Below the pieces are notes generated by a model, which saw only the letters and a list, made by a program, of their open reading frames with translations, was not told the origin of the DNA and searched no databases. A stretch of 64,000 bases of DNA, taken from assembly GCA_964252035.1 (NCBI GenBank), contig OZ176202.1. One strand, given 5' to 3'. Both the position numbers and the translations under genes were made by a program. The stretch comes from Podarcis erhardii. Its lineage: Eukaryota. This document shows positions 5,404-33,398 of this stretch, in pieces. The stretch's first letter is position 1; each line of letters opens with the position of its first letter.

Positions 5404-6590
5404 CAATAGTTCTTCCTTCTAGGAACATAATCACTGGGCTTTTCTTTCTCTCAGAAACAATTGGGGAAGGAATGGTTGCTGCTCCTTCTTATTGCTCTGG
5501 TTTGTTTGCTTGCTTAATATGCAGCTTGATCTTCAGTTCCTTGTTTCTCAGGACCTTTCCCCATCTCCAAGTGAGGGCTTAATCCTGTTAATGCCAAACT
5601 TGCAATATTCCCTTTTGTCACATATATTCAACTGCAAACTATGGATCCCTGAGCAACAGGGGTCTTTAGCCACATAAATTCAGCCAGTCATTGTCAGAGA
5701 CTTCACTGTGACAAGTCCAATGTAGACTGTATGCCAGCCTTCAGCCTCGCTGCCAGGCCGGGCCGGGCAACAGCCAATGCCCAACCAGCATGCTAGGCAC
5801 CACCCTCCAAACGGGGCCTCTGATTGGCCCATTCAAATTAGCCCTCTTTGGCGGGAAGACTGCCCATTGATACCACCAGCCAAGGGGAATTCTCCAGCCC
5901 CAGCCTGCAAACAAGCACAACCTAGTTGCTGGGGTCATACACAGAGGGGGCCTCAACTGTTGCTCCCCACAGACACAGTGAGCAGCCACTGTAGGACAGC
6001 CTTCCTCTGAGGCCCAGGACAGTACATATGAGTTTCCTCCCCCCCCACACACACACACACCGTTCCTCATCACAACAACACAGGCATTGATGTCCACAGG
6101 GAGGTTAAGGTTATTCCCCTTCTGTCAGATGAACCATAATCCCAGATTTTATTTTTTAAAACCAGCCTTTTTAGAACCTAAGATAAGAGGTAAAGGGGGC
6201 AGACACCCTTCTGCCAGAGTGTGGGTGTGTGTAACTAGTCTGCTCCCACATTTCACTGTTTTAGCCGAAATGCATACCCTGACAGAATGATCACCTTAAT
6301 ATGGCTTTTCCTTCCAACATCTCTTGCAGAAAATAATGTTGTTCTTTTGGAGGAGGGAAGGGTTGAAGGTGGATGTCCCAGGTTTTATGGGCGCACACCA
6401 AACATTTATTGTGGCTTGCAGAGTACTTGACAGGCTGTTTATGGCGTCTATGATGGGAGTCATACATATCTGGCAGGCTGCATTTGGCTTATTGAGCTGG
6501 AAGCAATGCAGGCCTGAGTTGCAGGATTCGGCTGTGAATGTCTTGCCTGTAACGTATAGCTTTTGTTGATATATGTTATTTTTCTTCCAG

Positions 6591-8107
6591 ACCTACAATA
6601 TTTTCAACGATGATAACCTGGAATACAGTGGTTTGTCTCGTCAGTTTCTCTTCAAGCGCCTGGAGCCTTTCACTCTCTACATCCTAGTCCTTGAAGCTTG
6701 CACTGCAGCTGGCTGCAGCCGCTCTTCACCCCAGCCAATCTGGACAGACGAAGCTCCTCCTGAATCTCAGCTGGCCCCTGTAATCCAGTCGGTGAATGCA
6801 ACCGGCATTGGACTGAGCTGGTCTCCGCCAATTAATTCAAATGGAAAAATAATGCGCTATGAAGTTATTCAGAGACGCAGCAAAGGAAATGCTTCAGGGA
6901 ACAATGCAACAACAGAAGAAGAGGAAAATGTTTTCACCGAATATAACACTGGGAGCACAACATTTGTATACAGTGCTCAACATTTGCAGCCATGGACAAG
7001 GTATGAATATAAGATACGTGCCTGGAATTCAGCCGGTTATGCTGACAGTTCATGGTCTGCTGCAGAGACCAGTCAAGCTGCCCCAGTGGGCTTGGCTGCC
7101 CCTGTCTTGAGATATATCCCCAAAAGTCCAAACAAAATTTGGATCTTGTGGTCCTCCCCAGAAGAGCCCAATGGCATTTTGCAGTCTTATAGGCTCCACA
7201 GAAATAACGTTCCATATCCTTTTAGCTTTGACGCTGCTACTTTCAACTATACTGATGAAGAGTTACTGCCATATACAGAATACAACTATGCAGTAACTGC
7301 TTGTACTATGGGAGGCTGCTCCACCAGCAACCATGCCAGTATTCGGACACTTGAGGCAGCTCCAGCATTCGTGGACCCTCCCACCCTAGAAGATCTTGGT
7401 TCCACCCAAATGAACATATCGTGGTTACCACCCCAGATCCAAAATGGAGAAATCACAAAGTACATTTTAAAATTAAATGGTGAAGAGCTCTATGTTGGAA
7501 AAAGTTTATTCAGAAAAGTGTTGAATCTACAGCCTTATACCAGGTATGACATCATGCTAGTTGCTTGTACCAATGGAGGCTGTACAGCTAGTGCACCCCA
7601 ATCTGTTTGGACAATGGAGGCTGCACCACTTAATATAGATGCCCCCAGCTTGCTAGTGACAGGTTCAGAATCGATAGAAATCATGTGGAAGGCTCCTGCA
7701 AATCCAAATGGCAAAATCCAAAGTTATGAGCTAAGGAGAGACGGGTTTCTGGTTTATTTGGGGCTAGATACTCGTTATCATGACTTTATGCTAACTCCAG
7801 GAAAAGAATACAGCTACGCTGTTACTGCAAACAACAGCCAAGGAAGCGTCACCAGTGCTGTAGCCACAAGCAGAACTAATCCCTCTGCCCCATCTGGAAT
7901 GTCACCTCCTCGACTGCAGGCATGGTCCTCAGAGACAATTTTGGTTACTTGGGACCCACCAGCAAAAGTCAATGGGGATATAGTCAGCTATACAATCACG
8001 CTGCGGGACCCTATTGAATCGGAGAAGAAAGCTGTTCATCTGGAGTCAACACATGTTTCCTTTGGGAGGCGGTACTACACTTTCGCTGCATTAAAACCCT
8101 ATCACAG
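6591..8107 (+). CDS. USH2A: Usherin exon (human exon 63 equivalent), tandem FN3 repeats
   Basis: ttccag|ACCTAC...CAG|gtaact; 1517 nt, the recalled human size; lies in ORF 6573-8111 with repeated W..P...NG.I..Y FN3 signatures. Confidence 0.97.
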
Positions 8108-8597
8108 GTAACTTGTGAACACGTACTTCGATGAGTGAATATTGTCTCTTATTCTGATCATAGTGTGACCCATGAAAAAAGCAGAACAAAATGCTCTTAT
8201 GCCAATGCAGCCCTAGATGACTTGCGAATTTTGGCTCCCTGTAACCAGTTTGTTCTACCGGTTAAGGGGGAATTGGGAGGTTGGTATCCTCAAGATGCAG
8301 AAAACCAAACAGCATGTAAAAATAGACTTAGCAGGAAGGACCCCATATTTCTCCCTGACAGAGGCACCAGCTTCTTTGCATGATTGAGGGAGCCCTACAC
8401 AACATCATGGTATCACGCACACAATGTCATGAGGAGCTAGGGGGTGGTGCTGAACATTGAGGGGGCCAAAAAGTGCTTCGGCCCCTAGAAGCTACCAGCT
8501 ATGCTGCCTAACAGAGCTGTGCCTTCAGAATATGATGCTAGGTTAGTGGAGTTTGCCAAAATATTCCTGCTAATACATTATGAACAATGTCTCAAGG

Positions 8598-24845: not shown

Positions 24846-24873
24846 CAATGGTGCCCCGCAAGACGAATGCCTC
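24846..24873. mobile_element. Left end of a Tc1/mariner-type MITE split by the Gypsy insertion
   Basis: TA|CAATGGTGCCCCGCAAGACGAA matches the inverse of the right TIR TTCGTCTTGCGAGGCACCACTG|TA. Confidence 0.88.
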
Positions 24874-25472
24874 TGTGATGGCCTGGGATTCCGATTCAGA
24901 GGATGAACCAGAGGAATCCCAGCCTGCACAGGAGTCCCCGCCTCCAGGGCCGGCTGAACTGGGGCAAGGCCTAGATGCTGAAGAGCCTGCACCTGTGACA
25001 GAGCATCAGGAGCTGGCCCCAGGTGAAGCCCTTCTGGCCCCAGAGGGGCTTGACGACTCAGTGGCCACAGGTGAGCCTCCTCCAGGGCCCAGTAACCCTT
25101 CGGCCTCTCCTGATCTGCAGAGGCTTAGGGCAGAGAGGCGAAGGGAACTGGTTGCCCCCAGGAGGAGTGCTCGCCTTAAGGCCAGAGGAGGCGGGGCTCC
25201 TGGGGGTCGGGACCGCCCCCGGCCTTAGAAGAGGATAAAAGCCCAGTCAGCCTGGCCCCAGGTTGCGGGAGCAACGTCGTTGTTGGCTTTGGACCTTCCT
25301 GTGTTCCTGATCCCTGCTTGGCCTCCTGTTCCTGACTATCCGGTGTTCCAGTTCCCAGCTCGGCCTCCTGTTCCAGCGTACCTGTTCCCCGCCCGGCTCC
25401 CCGTCTTGGACCTCGCCCCTCTTCGTGTGGACTCTGCTTACACCCACGGTACCTTCCCCCGGGACCAGCACA
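24874..25472 (+). repeat. 5' LTR (599 bp)
   Basis: TGTGATGGCC...GGGACCAGCACA; no difference from the 3' LTR found by eye. Confidence 0.96.
25233..25241 (+). promoter_or_regulatory. TATA-like box of the LTR (GGATAAAAG)
   Basis: Only A/T-rich stretch in the GC-rich LTR; about 30 nt upstream of the inferred start site at 25265. Confidence 0.7.
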
Positions 25473-25474
25473 GT

Positions 25475-25484
25475 TTGCTCCCGC
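25475..25484 (+). promoter_or_regulatory. Self-priming primer-binding site TTGCTCCCGC
   Basis: Starts 2 nt after the LTR end; exact reverse complement of LTR 25265-25274 (GCGGGAGCAA); no TGG-type tRNA PBS. Confidence 0.8.
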
Positions 25485-25535
25485 CACACCCGCACTCCCC
25501 CTTAGTTGGGGTGCGTTCGGGAAGAGCCAGAGGCC

Positions 25536-28500
25536 ATGGCTGACCAGGCGGCTGCGCTGGTGGCATTGGCCCAGGAAAACCAGGCCTTGACCCACACCGT
25601 TCAGCAGCTAAGCGATGTGGTTGCGGCGCTTCAGCAGCGGTTGGAAGCCTTTCCAGATCCTGGGGCCGACGCCCTAGCTCCAGGCAAGTACCCAGTGGCC
25701 TTGCCAGAGAAATTTGATGGGACCCAGGCCAGTTTTCCCATGTTCCTCGCCCAGGCCAAGTTGTACATTCAGGGGCGAGCCCGGAACTTCCCTGACGACC
25801 GCACCAAGGTGCATTTTTTAATCAGTTTGTTAAAGGACCAGGCGGCCAAGTGGGCTTTGCCACTGCTCCGGCAAGACTCTCCTTTGCTAACGGACTATGT
25901 GGGGTTTTGTAACCACTTAGAGACTGCGTTTGGTAACCCACTGAAGGAGAGCCAAGCCAATCGGGCGATTCGTCGGTTGAGACAGGACAAGTCCACAGCC
26001 GCCGCCTACGCCACAGAATTTCGGCTGTTGGCACAAGACTTGTCTTGGAATGACTCTGCACTACGGGACCAGTATCTTGAGGGACTGTCGGACGAGATAC
26101 TGGACCAGTTGGCCATGATGGATCGTCCCACCACACTGGATACCCTCATTCAGCGGAGCCTGCAGATAGACGATCGGTTGGAGGACCGTCGCCAGACCCG
26201 AGACCGCCAGCACTCCCGACTCCTGGCGCCAGTCCTTCCCAGCAGGTCCACGCCCACAGCCGAGTTGCCAGTCGAGCCAACGCCGCTCGGGGCTGCGCGA
26301 CCTCGGCTCTCCCCCTCGGAGAAGTCGCGGCGTCGGGAGGGGAACCTGTGCCTTTACTGCGGTGGGGGTGGACATTACGCCCGTTCCTGTCCCGAGAAGC
26401 TACCAGTCGCAGGGAAACCGCCAACCTCGGTAGCCGAAGGCCCTAGCAACGTGGGGTCCCAAACCATGCAAGAAGGGCCCTCACCAGTAGAATTGCGACA
26501 TCTCATGGTACCGGTGCGTCTCTACCCTCCAGGTGGGCCCTGGATTCTTACCCACGCTTTGGTAGATTCGGGGGCAACCCGCTCCTATATGGACGCTGCC
26601 TTTGCCGCGCATCATCAGGTGCCACTTCAGAACAAGCCAGAACCGGTACAGGTGGAGGCAATTGACGGACGGCTCCTGCGTTCGGGTGCCGTCACTCGGG
26701 AGACCCAGCCCTTGGTCCTGTGTCTCCAGCAGCACCGGGAGGTGCGAACCTTGGACATTGCCTCCATGCCCCGGTTCCCCCTGGTGCTCGGAATGGACTG
26801 GCTAGAGGCTCACAACGTTCAGATTGACTGGGTCAAACGGACCGTACACTTCCCAGATCCATGTTCCCATGCTCAGTCGCAGATGCTAGCGGCCGCACCC
26901 ACGGAGGAGGCAGCACCCACGCTCCCAGCCGTGTACCGGGACTACCAAGACGTGTTCGAGGAACGGGGGGCAGACCAGCTGCCGCCGCATCGGTCTTTTG
27001 ACTGCGGCATAGACCTCCAGCCCGGAGCGCCCCTACCGGTGAGTCGCTTATACTCTCTAACAGAGCCAGAGCGCGAGGCTTTGCAGGACTTCTTGCGCAA
27101 GAACCTGGAGCGTGGGTTCATTAGGCCTTCCACCTCGCCTACTGCGGCACCAGTGCTCTTTGTTAAGAAGAAATGTGGGGAACTCCGTCCTTGCCATGAT
27201 TACCGAGCCCTAAACAAAATCACCATCCCAGACCGGTACCCCTTGCCCCTTATTTCGGAGTTGCTGGAGCGGGTGCAAGGGGCACAGGTGTTCACCAAGC
27301 TGGACCTCCGGGGGGCCTACAACTTGATTCGGATCCGAGCCGGGGATGAGTGGAAGACAGCGTTTGGGACCCGGTACGGGCAGTTCGAATACTTGGTTAT
27401 GCCTTTTGGTTTATGCAACGCGCCTGCTGTGTTCCAACGCTACATCAACCACGTGTTCCAGGATTTGTTAGACAAGTACGTGGTGGTGTACTTGGATGAC
27501 ATACTGGTTTACTCCCGTGACCCGGCTCGCCATGAGGGACATGTCCGGACCGTGCTGCAGCGCTTGCGTGAGCACCGTTTGTACGCAAAGCTCAGCAAGT
27601 GCGAGTTCCATCAGCGGACTGTGGACTTCCTTGGTCACCGGCTCTCTCCAGATGGGGTGCAGATGGACCCTGGGAAGGTGGCAGCGGTTTGAGAATGGGC
27701 GGCACCCCGGAACCGCAAGGACCTACAGCGTTTCCTGGGGTTCGCCAACTACTACCGGACCTTCATCGCAGATTATGCTCAGCGCACCACCCCGTTGACC
27801 CGGCTACTGCGCCCAAAGACGCCGTTTTCCTGGGACGAGGAGGCAGAGGAGGCGTTCCAGGGGTTGAAGGCCTGTTTCCAGAGGGCGCCGATCTTACAAC
27901 ATCCTGACCCCTCTCGACCCTTTGTGGTGGAGACCGACGCCTCCAGTACGGCTCTCGGTGCCGTCTTGTCTCAACAGAATGGACCTGAAGCGCCACTCTT
28001 GCCCTGTGCCTTCTATTCCCGCCAGCTCCTACCAGCGGAGCGTAACTATACTGTGTGGGAGCGGGAACTACTGGCCATCAAGGTGGCCTTTGAGGTCTGG
28101 CGCCACCATCTTGAGGGGGCACGACATCCGGTGGAGGTGAGAACCGACCACCGGAATCTGGAGTACCTCCAGACCACCCGCAAGCTGAACCAAAGACAGA
28201 TCCGGTGGGCGTTGTTCTTTTCCCGGTTCCAGTTCCGGATCCGCTATATCCCTAGCTCTCAGAACCAGAAGGCAGATGCCCTGTCCCGGAAACCTGAAGA
28301 CAACGCAGACACGGTACAGCAAGCAGAACCCACCACGATCCTACCTCCAGCTGCGTTCCTGGCCACCCAGGAGGCGGAACCACTGCAGGCTCGGGTGCGG
28401 GAACAGCAGCGGGTCGACGCTTGGGCCCAGGAACGACTCCGGGAGCTGGCTGAAGGGTCCAGCCCACAGTATCCGGGGCTGGTCCTGCATCAGGGCCTTC

Positions 28501-30209
28501 TGCTGCACCACGGCCGTCTGTACATCCCGCCAGGGCCACTGCGGCTGGAGGTTCTCCGGATGGCCCATGATGCCCCAGCAGCGGGGCACTTTGGACGGTA
28601 TCGGACCACCCATCTGGTCAGTCGTGAGTTTTGGTGGCCCCGCCTGAAGGCCGACGTGGCTCGCTACGTTGCTGGTTGTGATGTCTGCCGGCGCGCCAAG
28701 GGTCCTACCGGGCGACCCCCCGGCCTACTTCAGCCATTGCCAGTTCCACCGCGCCCTTGGCACACGGTTTCATTGGACTTTGTAGTGGACTTACCCCCGT
28801 CTCGTGGCTGTACCTGCCTTCTAGTGTTCTCCGACCATTTCACCAAGATGGTGCACTGCACCCCCTGCCCATCTGTACCCACAGCCAAGGAAACCGCTCA
28901 GCTGTACCTTCAGCATGTCTTCCGCCTGCATGGCCTACCAGAGCGCGTGGTGTCCGACCGGGGCGTTCAGTTCACATCCCGGTTCTGGCGAGCATTACAC
29001 CAGACCCTCGGGACAGAGGTCTGCCTCTCGTCAGCCTACCACCCACAGACCGATGGCCAGACGGAACGGGCGAACGCGGTGCTGGAGCAGTACCTCCGGT
29101 GTTACTGCAGCTACCAGCAGGATGACTGGGTCGACCACCTGGCATTGGCGGAGTTCGCCTACAACAACGCGGTGAATGCATCCACCCAGCAGACCCCGTT
29201 CCAGGCCAGTTACGGTTATCATCCACGGCTGTTTCCAGATGTGCTGCCGGCATCCGCAGTCCCGGCGGTGACGGAGTGGCTTCAAGAGCTCCAGTCCCAG
29301 CAACAGCTTTTGGTGGAGCAACTGCACCAGGCCAAGGAAGCGTACAAAGCCCAGGCCGACCGCCACCGCCAGGTGGGGCCGGAACTTCGCGTCGGTGACC
29401 TGGTTTGGCTCTCCACTCGCCACCTCCACCCCTCTCGACCTTCGCGGAAGTTGGACGCCCGCTTCAACGGCCCGTTCCCTATCGTGGACCAAGTCTCTCC
29501 TGTAGCATTCCGTCTCCGGTTACCCGCAACCCTGAAGGTTCACCCGGTCTTCCACAGGTCCCTGCTGAGTCCGGTGGCCCCACCCGACGAGTTCCACCCG
29601 AACCGTCCCCGTCCGCAGCCAGTGTTGGTTCAGGGAGAGCCTGAGTATGAGGTGGAACGCATCCTGGACTCCCGATACCGCAGGGGAAAGCTGCAGTATC
29701 TCATTGACTGGAAGGGGTATGGACCGGAGGACCGTTCCTGGGAACCAGCGGCCAACGTCCACGCACCTGCCTGCCTCCGAGAGTTCCATGCGACGTACCC
29801 CGGCAAGCCGGGTCCGGACCCTCGGTTGAGGGGGGGGCCTGGGAGGGGGGATGGTGTGATGGCCTGGGATTCCGATTCAGAGGATGAACCAGAGGAATCC
29901 CAGCCTGCACAGGAGTCCCCGCCTCCAGGGCCGGCTGAACTGGGGCAAGGCCTAGATGCTGAAGAGCCTGCACCTGTGACAGAGCATCAGGAGCTGGCCC
30001 CAGGTGAAGCCCTTCTGGCCCCAGAGGGGCTTGACGACTCAGTGGCCACAGGTGAGCCTCCTCCAGGGCCCAGTAACCCTTCGGCCTCTCCTGATCTGCA
30101 GAGGCTTAGGGCAGAGAGGCGAAGGGAACTGGTTGCCCCCAGGAGGAGTGCTCGCCTTAAGGCCAGAGGAGGCGGGGCTCCTGGGGGTCGGGACCGCCCC
30201 CGGCCTTAG
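25536..30209 (+). pseudogene. Single-frame gag-pol polyprotein (1557 codons) broken by one in-frame TGA at 27690-27692 (codon 719)
   Basis: GCCATGG start; PEG10/RTL-like capsid (PEKFDG...DDRTKVHFLISLL), CCHC knuckle CLYCGGGGHYARSC, protease LVDSGAT, RT YLDDILVY, RNase H VETDAS/DHRNL, IN HHCC and DDE, chromodomain EYEVERIL...IDWKGY...SWEP. Track ORFs 25506-27692 and 27795-30209 share one frame, and EWAAPRNRKDLQRFLGFANYYR follows the stop directly. Confidence 0.93.
29841..29851 (+). promoter_or_regulatory. Polypurine tract GGGAGGGGGGA
   Basis: Purine run ending 3 nt before the 3' LTR; also inside the pol reading frame. Confidence 0.85.
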
Positions 30210-30453
30210 AAGAGGATAAAAGCCCAGTCAGCCTGGCCCCAGGTTGCGGGAGCAACGTCGTTGTTGGCTTTGGACCTTCCTGTGTTCCTGATCCCTGCTT
30301 GGCCTCCTGTTCCTGACTATCCGGTGTTCCAGTTCCCAGCTCGGCCTCCTGTTCCAGCGTACCTGTTCCCCGCCCGGCTCCCCGTCTTGGACCTCGCCCC
30401 TCTTCGTGTGGACTCTGCTTACACCCACGGTACCTTCCCCCGGGACCAGCACA
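29855..30453 (+). repeat. 3' LTR (599 bp)
   Basis: Direct repeat of 24874-25472, followed by TSD GCCTC. Confidence 0.96.
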
Positions 30454-30458
30454 GCCTC

Positions 30459-30768
30459 GCAAGACGAAAAACCCGCTAGACGAAAGGGTTTTCCGTTTTG
30501 GAGGCGCTTCGCAAAACGAATTTCCCTATGGGCTTGCTTCGCAAGACGAAATGTCTTGTGAGTTTTTCCGACTTTTTTCCCCTCCCCCCCCCTTTTTCTA
30601 AGCCGCTAAGCTGCTTATCCGCTAAGCTGATAAGCCGCTAAAAGCCGCTAAAAGCCGCTAATAACGCTAATCTGCTAAGCCGTCAATGGGCTTGCTTCGC
30701 AAGACGAAAAAACCGCTGGACGAAGAGAATCGCGGAACGGATTCTTTTCGTCTTGCGAGGCACCACTG
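30459..30768. mobile_element. Remainder of the split MITE (about 338 bp when rejoined), with internal GCCGCTAA repeats
   Basis: Continues ...GCCTC|GCAAGACGAA; ends ...GCACCACTG followed by TA. Confidence 0.88.
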
Positions 30769-31290: not shown

Positions 31291-31599
31291 CAGGGCCAGA
31301 TTTAGGCTTGATGAGGCCCTAAGCTACTGAAGGTAATAGGGCCCTTTATATGTCTAGCTGTCCTTTGTCAACAACAAATTGTCGCTGTTTTTTGTGTTGA
31401 ATATATGCTATATGGTAATTTATGGACCTACACAACACAAAACACTGTTGCTGTATGTAGGTTTTATTTTATTTGTTTTTCATCTTATATTTTGGAAATG
31501 TACACCCAGTTTTTTTCCCTTTTAATTTTTGGGGGGGGGCCTCAAGAAAGTGGGGCCCTAAACTATAGCTTGTTTAGCTTATACGTTAATCCGGCACTG
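31291..31599. mobile_element. hAT-type MITE ending 15 nt upstream of USH2A exon 66
   Basis: TIRs CAGGGCCAGATTTA and (reverse complement) CAGTGCCGGATTAA, 11 of 14; 8-bp TSD CCTTTTTT / CCTTTTTC. Confidence 0.8.
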
Positions 31600-31614
31600 C
31601 CTTTTTCTTATCAG

Positions 31615-31853
31615 CTGTCAGAAGGAACAGCGACTCAACAAACCATCCACGGCCTGAGGCCTTTTACCACTTATTCTGTTGGGGTCGAAGCCTGTACCTG
31701 TTTCAGCTGCTGCAGCAAAGGACCCGTGGCACATGTCACCACACAGCCAGCTCCACCCTCACAGCAGCCTCCTCCCTTCATTCACAGCATGACCTCAAGG
31801 AATGCTTCTTTGCAGTGGGATGCACCTCGGGAACCCAATGGCATTGTAAGAAG
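31615..31853 (+). CDS. USH2A: Usherin exon (human exon 66 equivalent)
   Basis: tatcag|CTGTCA...AAG|gtaact; 239 nt; LSEGTATQQTIHGLRPFTTY...EPNGIVR. Confidence 0.95.
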
Positions 31854-33398
31854 GTAACTGCTAGGATATACTTGGTATTGGAACTAACATCTGTGCTGGC
31901 TGGGCTGACTCTTCAGTTGATTTTCAAATGTCTGTCTTCCATTTTCTAGTCAACTTTAACAGCATTCACACCTGACACCAATAATAGGAAAGAGGCTAAA
32001 GGGTTTTTATTTTTTGTAAGTGACGTGAAGGAAATGACTCGGGATTTCAAAGACTGCCTAAGGAACACAATGCCCATTAATGTTAAAGAGCCTTATAAAA
32101 TGGAATCTCCTTGTAGGAGATGTTGGAACTCAGTTTTACTCAGAGTAAACCCATTTGGATTAATGAACATGACTAAGTTTGGTCCATTAATTTCAGAGGG
32201 TGTACTCTGAGTGACACTTAGTTGAGTGTACGCATTGCCCTCAAAACAAACTGGAATCCTAGCAATCAGTGTTTGGTGGGAAGAAGAACAGACTGAATCT
32301 GGTTGCTCCATCCAAACAGCTGGTTGGTGAGATTCCAAATGTTTATCTGCAGCCATGGTTGCTAGACTTGGCTGGAGACTATGTGCCACACCCTTTCACC
32401 AACATGGGGAAGGCGTTATTGGTTTGATTTCTTCTTGTTTTTCTTATGTATTTTGTGTTTTTTATCTTGTATTTCTGTGTTGTGAACTTCCCTGAGAGCT
32501 ATGGATGAAGGGCAATATACAATTTTAACAACAACAAGGGATATACAGGCAATGACCTACCATTCACATATAGCCAAATTAGAGGCTTATAGCTTAGTAA
32601 ACCCTCACCATCACGGTGATTACAGCATATGAACTAGCAAATACAAAAATAAAATAAAATAAAATAAAATCAGTGTCTTGTTGATGCCACCAAACTTAAT
32701 TTTCCTTAGACAAATCAAGAATGAATATCAGTGCCTAAGAAAACTAGGCAAATTAATTATCTGTTCCTTTGGAACTGACAGTCTTGGAAAAATCCCAGGC
32801 ATATAGATACTAGCTGTCTACAAATCAACATAGACCTTTTCTTCTTCTTGCCCTTGCCCTCCCCCTCCCCCGCTGCACTGTTTACCATCTAGCCTCCCCC
32901 CTACCATCTAGTTTGGAAAACTCAAAACCCAACACACTATTTTGTGACATGGATTTTAGAAATTTGTTGTTGGTGTGCCAGAATTTGTAACATTTTCCCA
33001 GACTTATAATGTATTAGGGTCTAAGCATTTGTAAATAGGATGCTGGCACTAAGGATCTGGAGAGACCCCTAGACATGCAGGTCTAGTTACCTTAAAAAGT
33101 TATCACTTCAATATTTTCAATACTGGCATACAGTTGAGTTTTCAATAATCATTGTAAGATGCTCTGGGATGCCCTGGCCAAGATAAAATGACTAGAAAAT
33201 TCAAAACATCATCATCAATTAATGTAGAATATTGTTAAAATATTGAATGTGATGTGCAGAGTTCTGCAGCAATTGCAACTTAATTAAGTTGAGAGCAGGT
33301 CCTTGTGTTTGACCAGCATCAAGACACATAAGCAGGAAAGGTAAGCTTGTGTTTACCTGCTAATTGTGGCTTATCAGTGCTTCCGTCTTTTCCTCCAG

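Follow-up and report, generated by a model that had tools for sequence, protein, structure and literature searches.

An HMGN-like RRSARL core ending a long terminal repeat-encoded integrase tail in a Podarcis chromovirus: a testable hypothesis of a second nucleosome contact

The RRSAR segment of HMGN2 and the PPRRSSRLT segment of Dsup have been resolved on the H2A-H2B acidic patch of the nucleosome by cryo-electron microscopy (cryo-EM), where the last arginine of HMGN2 (R26) is the anchor, the serine (S24) is hydrogen-bonded and phosphoserine was modelled to repel the acidic patch (PMC12487698). The motif RRSARIAT of Dot5 is necessary for acidic-patch-dependent nucleosome binding, and LANA serves as an acidic-patch binder (PMC13347269). 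As isolated motifs, RRSSRLTS of Dsup and RRSARIAT of Dot5 are experimentally sufficient and necessary for acidic-patch-dependent binding, in cooperation with a second contact (PMC13347269, PMC12480509, PMC12487698). Among retroelements, the C-terminal tail of the murine leukaemia virus (MLV) integrase is described as binding the ET domain of BET proteins (PMC4027182), and the polyprotein of CRM group A chromoviruses reaches into the long terminal repeat (LTR) at the 3′ end, and this LTR encodes a putative targeting domain, the CR motif, at the integrase C-terminus (PMC3059260). Because of this plant precedent, LTR-encoded integrase ends are not new in themselves. Here a stretch of 64,000 nucleotides from the lizard Podarcis erhardii (contig OZ176202.1 of assembly GCA_964252035.1; hereafter the window) was analysed. 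It contains a 5.58-kb LTR retrotransposon at 24874-30453, which is a young Tf1/sushi-type chromovirus of Podarcis lizards, and the integrase frame of this element runs past the chromodomain into the 3′ LTR and ends in an arginine-rich block with the motif RRSARL. We give a probability of about 0.38 to the reading that the Podarcis module is an arginine anchor of the HMGN/Dsup type on the H2A-H2B acidic patch that works jointly with the chromodomain.

Translated in frame 1 of the plus strand, positions 30102-30164 read RLRAERRRELVAPRRSARLKA. As the initial annotation had stated, RRSARL is encoded at 30141-30158 and a second copy of the 18-mer lies at 25160-25177, inside the 5′ LTR. It is confirmed that the motif is in frame with pol, since the segments 25506-27692 and 27693-30209 form one frame, and that it is encoded by the U3 (unique 3′) region of the 3′ LTR, pol translation continuing through the polypurine tract (PPT) and then through 117 LTR codons. 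RRSARLKA matches seven of the eight residues of the HMGN core RRSARLSA and includes the RRSAR stretch resolved by cryo-EM (PMC12487698), so that the likeness claimed for it holds for the core. The plural serines of the phospho-switch suggested by analogy with HMGN are not supported, just one of the two core serines being present and lysine standing for the second. Beyond its two copies the 18-mer has no match with ≤3 mismatches within the 64-kb window (0.06 expected by chance), which is without any N, and RRS[AS]R[LI] has no further instance in the six-frame translation of the 64 kb. From composition, 1.3e-4 exact RRSARL motifs are expected in the tail and 7e-4 in the whole polyprotein. This chance figure is weak when taken alone because the motif was tested post hoc, and the comparative evidence weighs more.

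This peptide is the C-terminus of a genuine extension of the integrase. The open reading frame (ORF) stays uninterrupted across the 117 LTR codons and is maintained by three Podarcis subfamilies (P. muralis, P. lilfordi), and the architecture returns in a gecko. The tail consists of an acidic, proline-rich linker without any lysine or arginine and an Arg-rich end, a 38-residue block with 13 lysines and arginines (Table 1). The long disordered linker that had been proposed is also predicted by AlphaFold2, with a predicted local distance difference test score (pLDDT) <50 over model residues 63-150 (88 residues). In the Arg-rich end of Podarcis a V-A/S-P break lies between the predicted helix DLQRLRAERRRELV and RRSARL, and the RRSARLKA segment is modelled as non-helical at low confidence (model residues 168-188, pLDDT <50). 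For comparison, AlphaFold 3 models of HMGN2 itself on the nucleosome were of low confidence and wrongly oriented (PMC12487698). The chromodomain preceding the tail folded confidently in the AlphaFold2 model (pLDDT 70-84) and proved canonical; the initial annotation was right in assigning a chromodomain to the integrase. It aligns without gaps with HP1alpha (CBX5) and HP1beta (CBX1), its Y, W and Y standing opposite Y, W and F of HP1, at what we take to be the aromatic-cage positions.

The closest proteins are gene models of Podarcis muralis and P. lilfordi, one of which (P0001) is 96% identical over the tail. Linker substitutions and indels separate three subfamilies, A (the window and P0001), B (P0018 and P0019) and C (L005, P0004 and P0176), and all their intact copies keep LQRLRAERRRELV[AS]PRRSARLKA. 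Nine LTR copies were taken from five P. lilfordi loci, 81-89% identical to the window LTR, and the ratio of nonsynonymous to synonymous differences (pN/pS) was obtained from Nei-Gojobori counts between subfamilies A and C. The linker gave 0.92-1.02 and by this measure evolves neutrally; the Arg-rich block gave 0.34-0.48, with 7-8.5 synonymous differences, and by the same measure is under purifying selection. Five Podarcis gene models (P0002, P0003, P0176, P0192 and P0203) were seen to carry the LTR ORF (MAWDSDSE...) at their start, spliced onto gag or onto a host class-C G-protein-coupled receptor. They are annotation artefacts or read-through chimeras, since U3 of the 5′ LTR lies outside what the element's own promoter transcribes, and because of such splicing onto gag or host exons several Podarcis tail matches are uninformative on the motif.

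Outside Podarcis one homologous tail was found, in a chromovirus of the gecko Heteronotia binoei (L089:41998-47515) with an integrase 66% identical to that of the window element. Its own LTR pair is 99.7% identical, and this element, too, is young. The gecko pol likewise reads through the PPT into the LTR and U3, with 85 codons after the chromodomain, and its tail has the same order as in Podarcis: PPT, LTR-start methionine, GGPG..D.VM junction, acidic stretch, proline-rich stretch and Arg-rich end. The two Arg-rich ends align without gaps in MAFFT, with PRRSARLKAR opposite RRRAARSQAR. Since the gecko element shares this tail architecture and RRxAR, the LTR-encoded tail and its Arg-rich end are, on this comparison, maintained features of a squamate lineage.

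A HMMER search with integrase, chromodomain and tail among 1.84 billion representatives gave 115,540 relatives, the best 150 of which align up to the chromodomain only. Relatives as a rule have a basic tail behind the chromodomain, KRRGRPAKRRK and KKSKAKK being two cases. In tails of 8-60 residues lysine and arginine make up 23.7%, versus 12.3% in protein bodies, and AT-hook-like RGRP cores occur 9 times in 14,110 tail residues versus 0 times in 154,019 body residues. AT-hook-like cores such as PRGRGRPRR and KRRGRPAKRRK were seen right after the chromodomain in P0063, P0064, P0071, P0084, P0114, P0121, P0142, P0150 and L029. A short basic peptide for contact with DNA or nucleosomes after the chromodomain thus looks like a common theme with varied realisations. 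One further relative, a Rhineura floridana gene model (P0035), joins TM9SF2 exons to a chromovirus integrase and chromodomain with 61% identity to the query, probably as a chimera that arose in annotation. Neither for this model nor for the P. muralis models known from UniRef only did an exact-protein look-up yield DNA.

In every relative fetched, the tail behind the chromodomain was scanned for RRS[AS]R[LI]. Two sequences from an environmental assembly (P0119/P0171) have QPRRSSRLQ in this tail, 17 nt inside a short LTR inferred on the evidence of its PPT, its TG..CA ends and a contig with collapsed LTRs. A further relative (P0199) has the motif twice, as MRRSARLL and SRRSSRLT, in a 356-residue Ser/Pro-rich tail before its PPT. 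The codons for the motif differ among these two unrelated metagenomic lineages and Podarcis. In 12,851 tail residues, within-tail shuffles lead one to expect 0.024 motifs. The reversed motif was found 0 times, and in 154,019 non-tail residues the strict motif was found 0 times. Three of five tail windows with the composition R3+S+[AS]+[LI] are in the HMGN order, and RRS in tails is followed by [AS]R[LI] in 3 of 20 cases, versus 0.038 expected, a test in which purine-rich RRS codons close to polypurine tracts are controlled for as well. When the RRSARL of P0199 is left out, 1 motif is observed versus 0.015 expected in the unbiased HMMER set, the second motif of P0199 has an expectation of 0.001, and the RRS-conditioned test gives P ~6e-4. 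That second motif, RRSSRL, is invariant in three otherwise decayed copies, and the first varies among copies (RRSARL, RRSVRL, RQSVRL). The tails of P0199, P0229 and P0230, copies of one environmental chromovirus, show many changes from Ser/Pro to Phe/Leu, reminiscent of C-to-T decay like that of repeat-induced point mutation, with RRSSRL untouched in all three. The motif is rare, being present in 2 of ~260 independent tails plus the Podarcis lineage. Near-motifs of the form PRRSSA(x)(x)R(R)G were noted just upstream of the PPT/LTR junction in tails of metagenomic chromoviruses (L013, L014, L017, P0195 and P0201), PRRSSARLRRG of P0201 being the HMGN core with a one-residue insertion.

We infer that the Arg-rich module is a functional chromatin-contact element. 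If it is an acidic-patch anchor, the chromodomain would contact methylated H3 and the RRSARL module would supply the intasome with a further contact to the nucleosome, independent of histone modification. In favour of the anchor stand the maintained coding frame, the selection on the Arg-rich block, the complete RRSAR with its following leucine where the less exact motifs of Dsup and Dot5 suffice for binding, the non-helical setting behind a linker predicted to be disordered, the recurrence of the motif and the basic tails of relatives. The single serine could make the acidic-patch contact phospho-sensitive, and the tail anchor would be one realisation of a wider chromovirus habit of following the chromodomain with a short basic motif that binds DNA or nucleosomes. 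Several observations weigh against this anchor. Related families did not show strict conservation of the motif, and a lack of conservation there had been named as refuting in the initial annotation itself. Among the best 150 relatives, 94 of the 143 with a recognisable chromodomain end <20 residues past it, and the long tail is therefore lineage-specific. The gecko element has RRAARS at the motif site, with the three arginines (RRxAR) in common and not the serine and leucine; the motif is invariant in the three Podarcis subfamilies, though at the nucleotide level too, and is kept in part in the gecko. Protein searches seeded with the tail alone gave matches only in Podarcis, hmmscan of the 129-residue tail against Pfam at E ≤ 1 gave 0 families, HMG14_17 included, and phmmer of the basic tail segment against PDB at E ≤ 10 gave 0 matches. 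The RRSARL of P0199 is ascertainment-biased because the words that seeded its search included those of the query tail, and an independent set of 80 metagenome loci, found with a 10-sequence alignment, has 0 motifs in 1418 tail residues, which is too few for power; the same alignment found no matches in viral contigs. A single in-frame stop also interrupts the otherwise open gag-pol frame 25536-30209 within the reverse transcriptase (RT), so that this copy cannot make integrase by itself. Overall, the two-point tether first proposed gains from the selection on the Arg-rich block and from the recurrence of the motif and loses strict conservation, and the binding itself is a prediction.

The Arg-rich end could instead be a nuclear localisation signal (NLS) for the integrase or the pre-integration complex, with a coincidental HMGN match, an alternative already named in the initial annotation which fits equally well at the sequence level and which we regard as possible though on balance unlikely. 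The segment RRRELVAPRRSARLKAR, which overlaps the motif and likewise counts against a specific anchor, is one match to (K/R)(K/R)-X10-12-(3 of 5 K/R), a loose bipartite pattern here made of two basic residues, a 10-residue spacer and three basic residues of five. The basic tails of relatives, the gecko homologue that keeps arginines and not the exact HMGN core, and the C-terminal bipartite NLS which Ty1 integrase is known to carry fit this alternative as well, but an NLS needs basic clusters only and leaves unexplained why RRS[AS]RL is found in this order in three lineages with permutations absent. NLS and anchor functions are mutually compatible. Rather improbable, in our estimate, is a generic arginine-rich helix with a charge-based affinity for nucleosomes or for DNA or RNA (cDNA ends, genomic RNA), in place of a specific acidic-patch anchor. 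The helical prediction for DLQRLRAERRRELV, the R-periodic Arg-rich block of the gecko (SRVARVRDRLRQDLRDRRRAARSQARRS), which is without the proline break, and the AT-hook-like RGRP cores that relatives carry instead would suit it; the V-A/S-P break, however, sets the segment modelled as non-helical apart in Podarcis, and the recurrence statistics concern a specific ordered motif. The peptide could also be a passenger of conserved promoter-proximal U3 DNA, its frame open but devoid of function at the protein level. The RRSARLKA codons are nucleotide-identical in every copy seen, though copies differ by ~12% elsewhere, and, counted upstream from the TATA-like box, the RRSARL codons stand at 57-74 nt, next to GC-box cores. 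Constraint at the DNA level on exactly these 24 nt is possible for these two reasons and is a further point against an anchor, and GC-rich sequence is poor in stop codons anyway. Nevertheless we hold the passenger to be decidedly improbable in view of the pN/pS of the block with synonymous changes around the motif, of a frame that stays open in three subfamilies and in the gecko although amino-acid identity is just 40%, and of the different codons used by unrelated lineages. Capture of a host HMGN gene fragment by the LTR, to which the seven matching residues of RRSARLSA are all that points, is rejected, on comparison at the protein level, for want of any similarity outside the octapeptide; the Pfam profile HMG14_17 gave no match at E ≤ 1, protein searches with the tail gave no HMGN or PDB match, and, by the gecko homologue, the block evolved out of an Arg-rich sequence of a generic kind. 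Returning to the acidic-patch anchor, a wider form of it is that HMGN/Dsup-type anchors evolved repeatedly beside the chromodomain, in lizards as well as two further, unrelated lineages that are probably fungal, as a two-point reading of the nucleosome, with the squamate U3 serving as both promoter and source of a targeting peptide. This wider form would be somewhat unlikely by our own estimate and is put forward tentatively.

The remaining anatomy of the element is given in Table 1. The order gag, protease, RT, RNase H and integrase, the flanking LTRs with a target-site duplication and the C-terminal canonical HP1-like chromodomain are those of a chromovirus. The two LTRs are 100% identical, and the element was therefore inserted very recently. 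Positions 25265-25274 and 25475-25484 form a perfect 10-nt complement, which suggests self-priming of the Tf1/sushi type rather than a tRNA primer, with a putative mechanism and transcription start. From the position of this complement the U3/R border falls near 30243, so that the coding part covers about 91% of U3. The stop codon in RT, side by side with identical LTRs, was noted as the mark of a copy that is either very young and freshly mutated or mobilised in trans. Programmed read-through at this stop was considered and rejected because it is not at the gag/pol boundary. Outside the element, 6573-8111 is a long ORF with five fibronectin type III (FN3) domains and 31405-31857, on the same strand at the other side of the element, an ORF with a weak FN3 match; the retrotransposon may sit inside an FN3-repeat host gene. 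The sequence CGCAAGACGAA occurs on both flanks just outside the target duplication (24853-24873 and 30454-30480), and the insertion target itself seems to be a short local repeat.

Table 1. Features of the Podarcis chromovirus and its LTR-encoded integrase tail (positions in the window)
Feature	Position	Strand	Remarks
Target-site duplication GCCTC (5 bp)	24869-24873; 3′ copy 30454-30458	+	
5′ LTR, 599 bp, TG..CA	24874-25472	+	untranslated duplicate of the tail-coding sequence inside
TATA-like GATAAAAG	25234-25241 (5′ LTR); 30215-30222 (3′ LTR)	+	starts 5 nt past the pol stop codon
GCGGGAGCAA	25265-25274; 3′ LTR copy 30246-30255	+	31 nt downstream of the TATA-like box; putative R start, self-primer
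Primer-binding-site-like TTGCTCCCGC	25475-25484	+	immediately after the 5′ LTR
Gag (DUF4939/Ty3 capsid, CCHC), protease and the part of RT before the break	25536-27689	+	Pfam
In-frame stop inside the RT/RNase H connection	27690-27692	+	
RNase H, integrase zinc-binding domain, rve core, Tf2-type SH3	27693-29645	+	Pfam
Chromodomain	29646-29789	+	Pfam Chromo, E = 4.6e-15
Polypurine tract, itself coding (..RGGPGRGDG)	29828-29854	+	
3′ LTR, 599 bp, TG..CA	29855-30453	+	first 355 nt (~91% of U3) code for the integrase tail
Acidic, proline-rich linker, 79 residues	29856-30092	+	0 K+R, 19 D+E, 16 P, two CK2-type S-x-x-D/E sites
Short predicted helix DLQRLRAERRRELV	30093-30134	+	AlphaFold2, pLDDT ~56-62
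Loose bipartite-NLS match RRRELVAPRRSARLKAR	30117-30167	+	overlaps RRSARL; pattern match only
RRSARL, HMGN-like core	30141-30158	+	codons AGG AGG AGT GCT CGC CTT; RRSARLKA = 30141-30164
Two GC-box cores, GGCGGG at 30171 and CCGCCC at 30194	30171-30199	+	within the last tail codons; putative function
pol stop codon TAG	30207-30209	+	

Chromatin tethers are known for few LTR retrotransposons and retroviruses, namely the chromodomain on H3K9me, Ty5 on Sir4, MLV on BET proteins, Ty1 and Ty3 on the RNA polymerase III machinery and prototype foamy virus Gag on the acidic patch; we know of no direct acidic-patch anchor reported on an integrase. The design had been called undescribed, and in agreement with this the literature search found no paper in which a retrotransposon integrase is tied to the acidic patch or to motifs of the HMGN kind. 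If the anchor is real, it would add a bivalent nucleosome-reading design, and would show how a fast-evolving U3, constrained both as coding and as regulatory sequence, can be turned to the invention of targeting peptides. What has been called the "untapped realm" of HMGN-like nucleosome binders (PMC12487698) would gain members as well. Should it be wrong, what is left is an ordinary young chromovirus with a basic tail resembling an NLS. An anchor of this kind, in an acidic-basic tail that the LTR of a chromovirus adds to its integrase and that bears an HMGN-like core, is accordingly offered as a hypothesis testable with peptides and recombinant nucleosomes, and not as a demonstrated mechanism.

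Compared with HMGN, the Podarcis core has R, S, R and L together with the whole patch-contacting RRSAR, in a context that is predicted to be disordered. In HMGN the serine and leucine (R-S-RL) are said to have been found essential by Ueda et al. in 2008. The element differs in having no similarity outside the octapeptide, the nucleosome-binding domain of ~30 residues being undetected by the Pfam profile, and in carrying the motif at the end of a gag-pol polyprotein of ~1550 residues, whereas HMGN is a stand-alone vertebrate chromatin protein of ~100 residues. With Dsup and Dot5 it shares RRS[AS]R[LI] in a predicted disordered segment of an unrelated protein, and RRSARLKA is closer to the consensus than the motif of either; the exact RRSSRL of Dsup occurs in P0119 and P0199. 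Those two are host proteins with measured binding, whereas here the carrier is the integrase of a mobile element and the binding is a prediction. Like CRM group A, the Podarcis chromovirus has an ORF that continues in the 3′ LTR, where a putative targeting domain is encoded, but the CR motif replaces the chromodomain, the Podarcis tail is added after an intact one, and no sequence relation was seen. In chromoviruses of the MAGGY/Tf1 type, integration is reportedly directed by the chromodomain through a single contact to H3K9me, as attributed to Gao et al. in 2008. These have the same domain order and HP1-like chromodomain, to which the Podarcis element adds its long acidic and basic tail. The Ty5 integrase has a targeting domain that binds Sir4 and is phospho-regulated, a precedent for a phospho-switch. 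As in the MLV and Ty5 integrases, the chromatin tether proposed here would be a short linear motif within a disordered C-terminal tail of the integrase, but the motifs of those two bind host adaptor proteins and not the histone surface directly. The proposed surface and the arginine-anchor principle are those of the N-terminus of LANA from Kaposi's sarcoma-associated herpesvirus and of the chromatin-binding sequence of foamy virus Gag, which both place arginine anchors on the acidic patch; their sequences are different and their carriers are not integrases. The NLS of Ty1 integrase is likewise a basic, bipartite-like cluster at an integrase C-terminus, with the difference that an NLS needs no ordered RRS[AS]RL.

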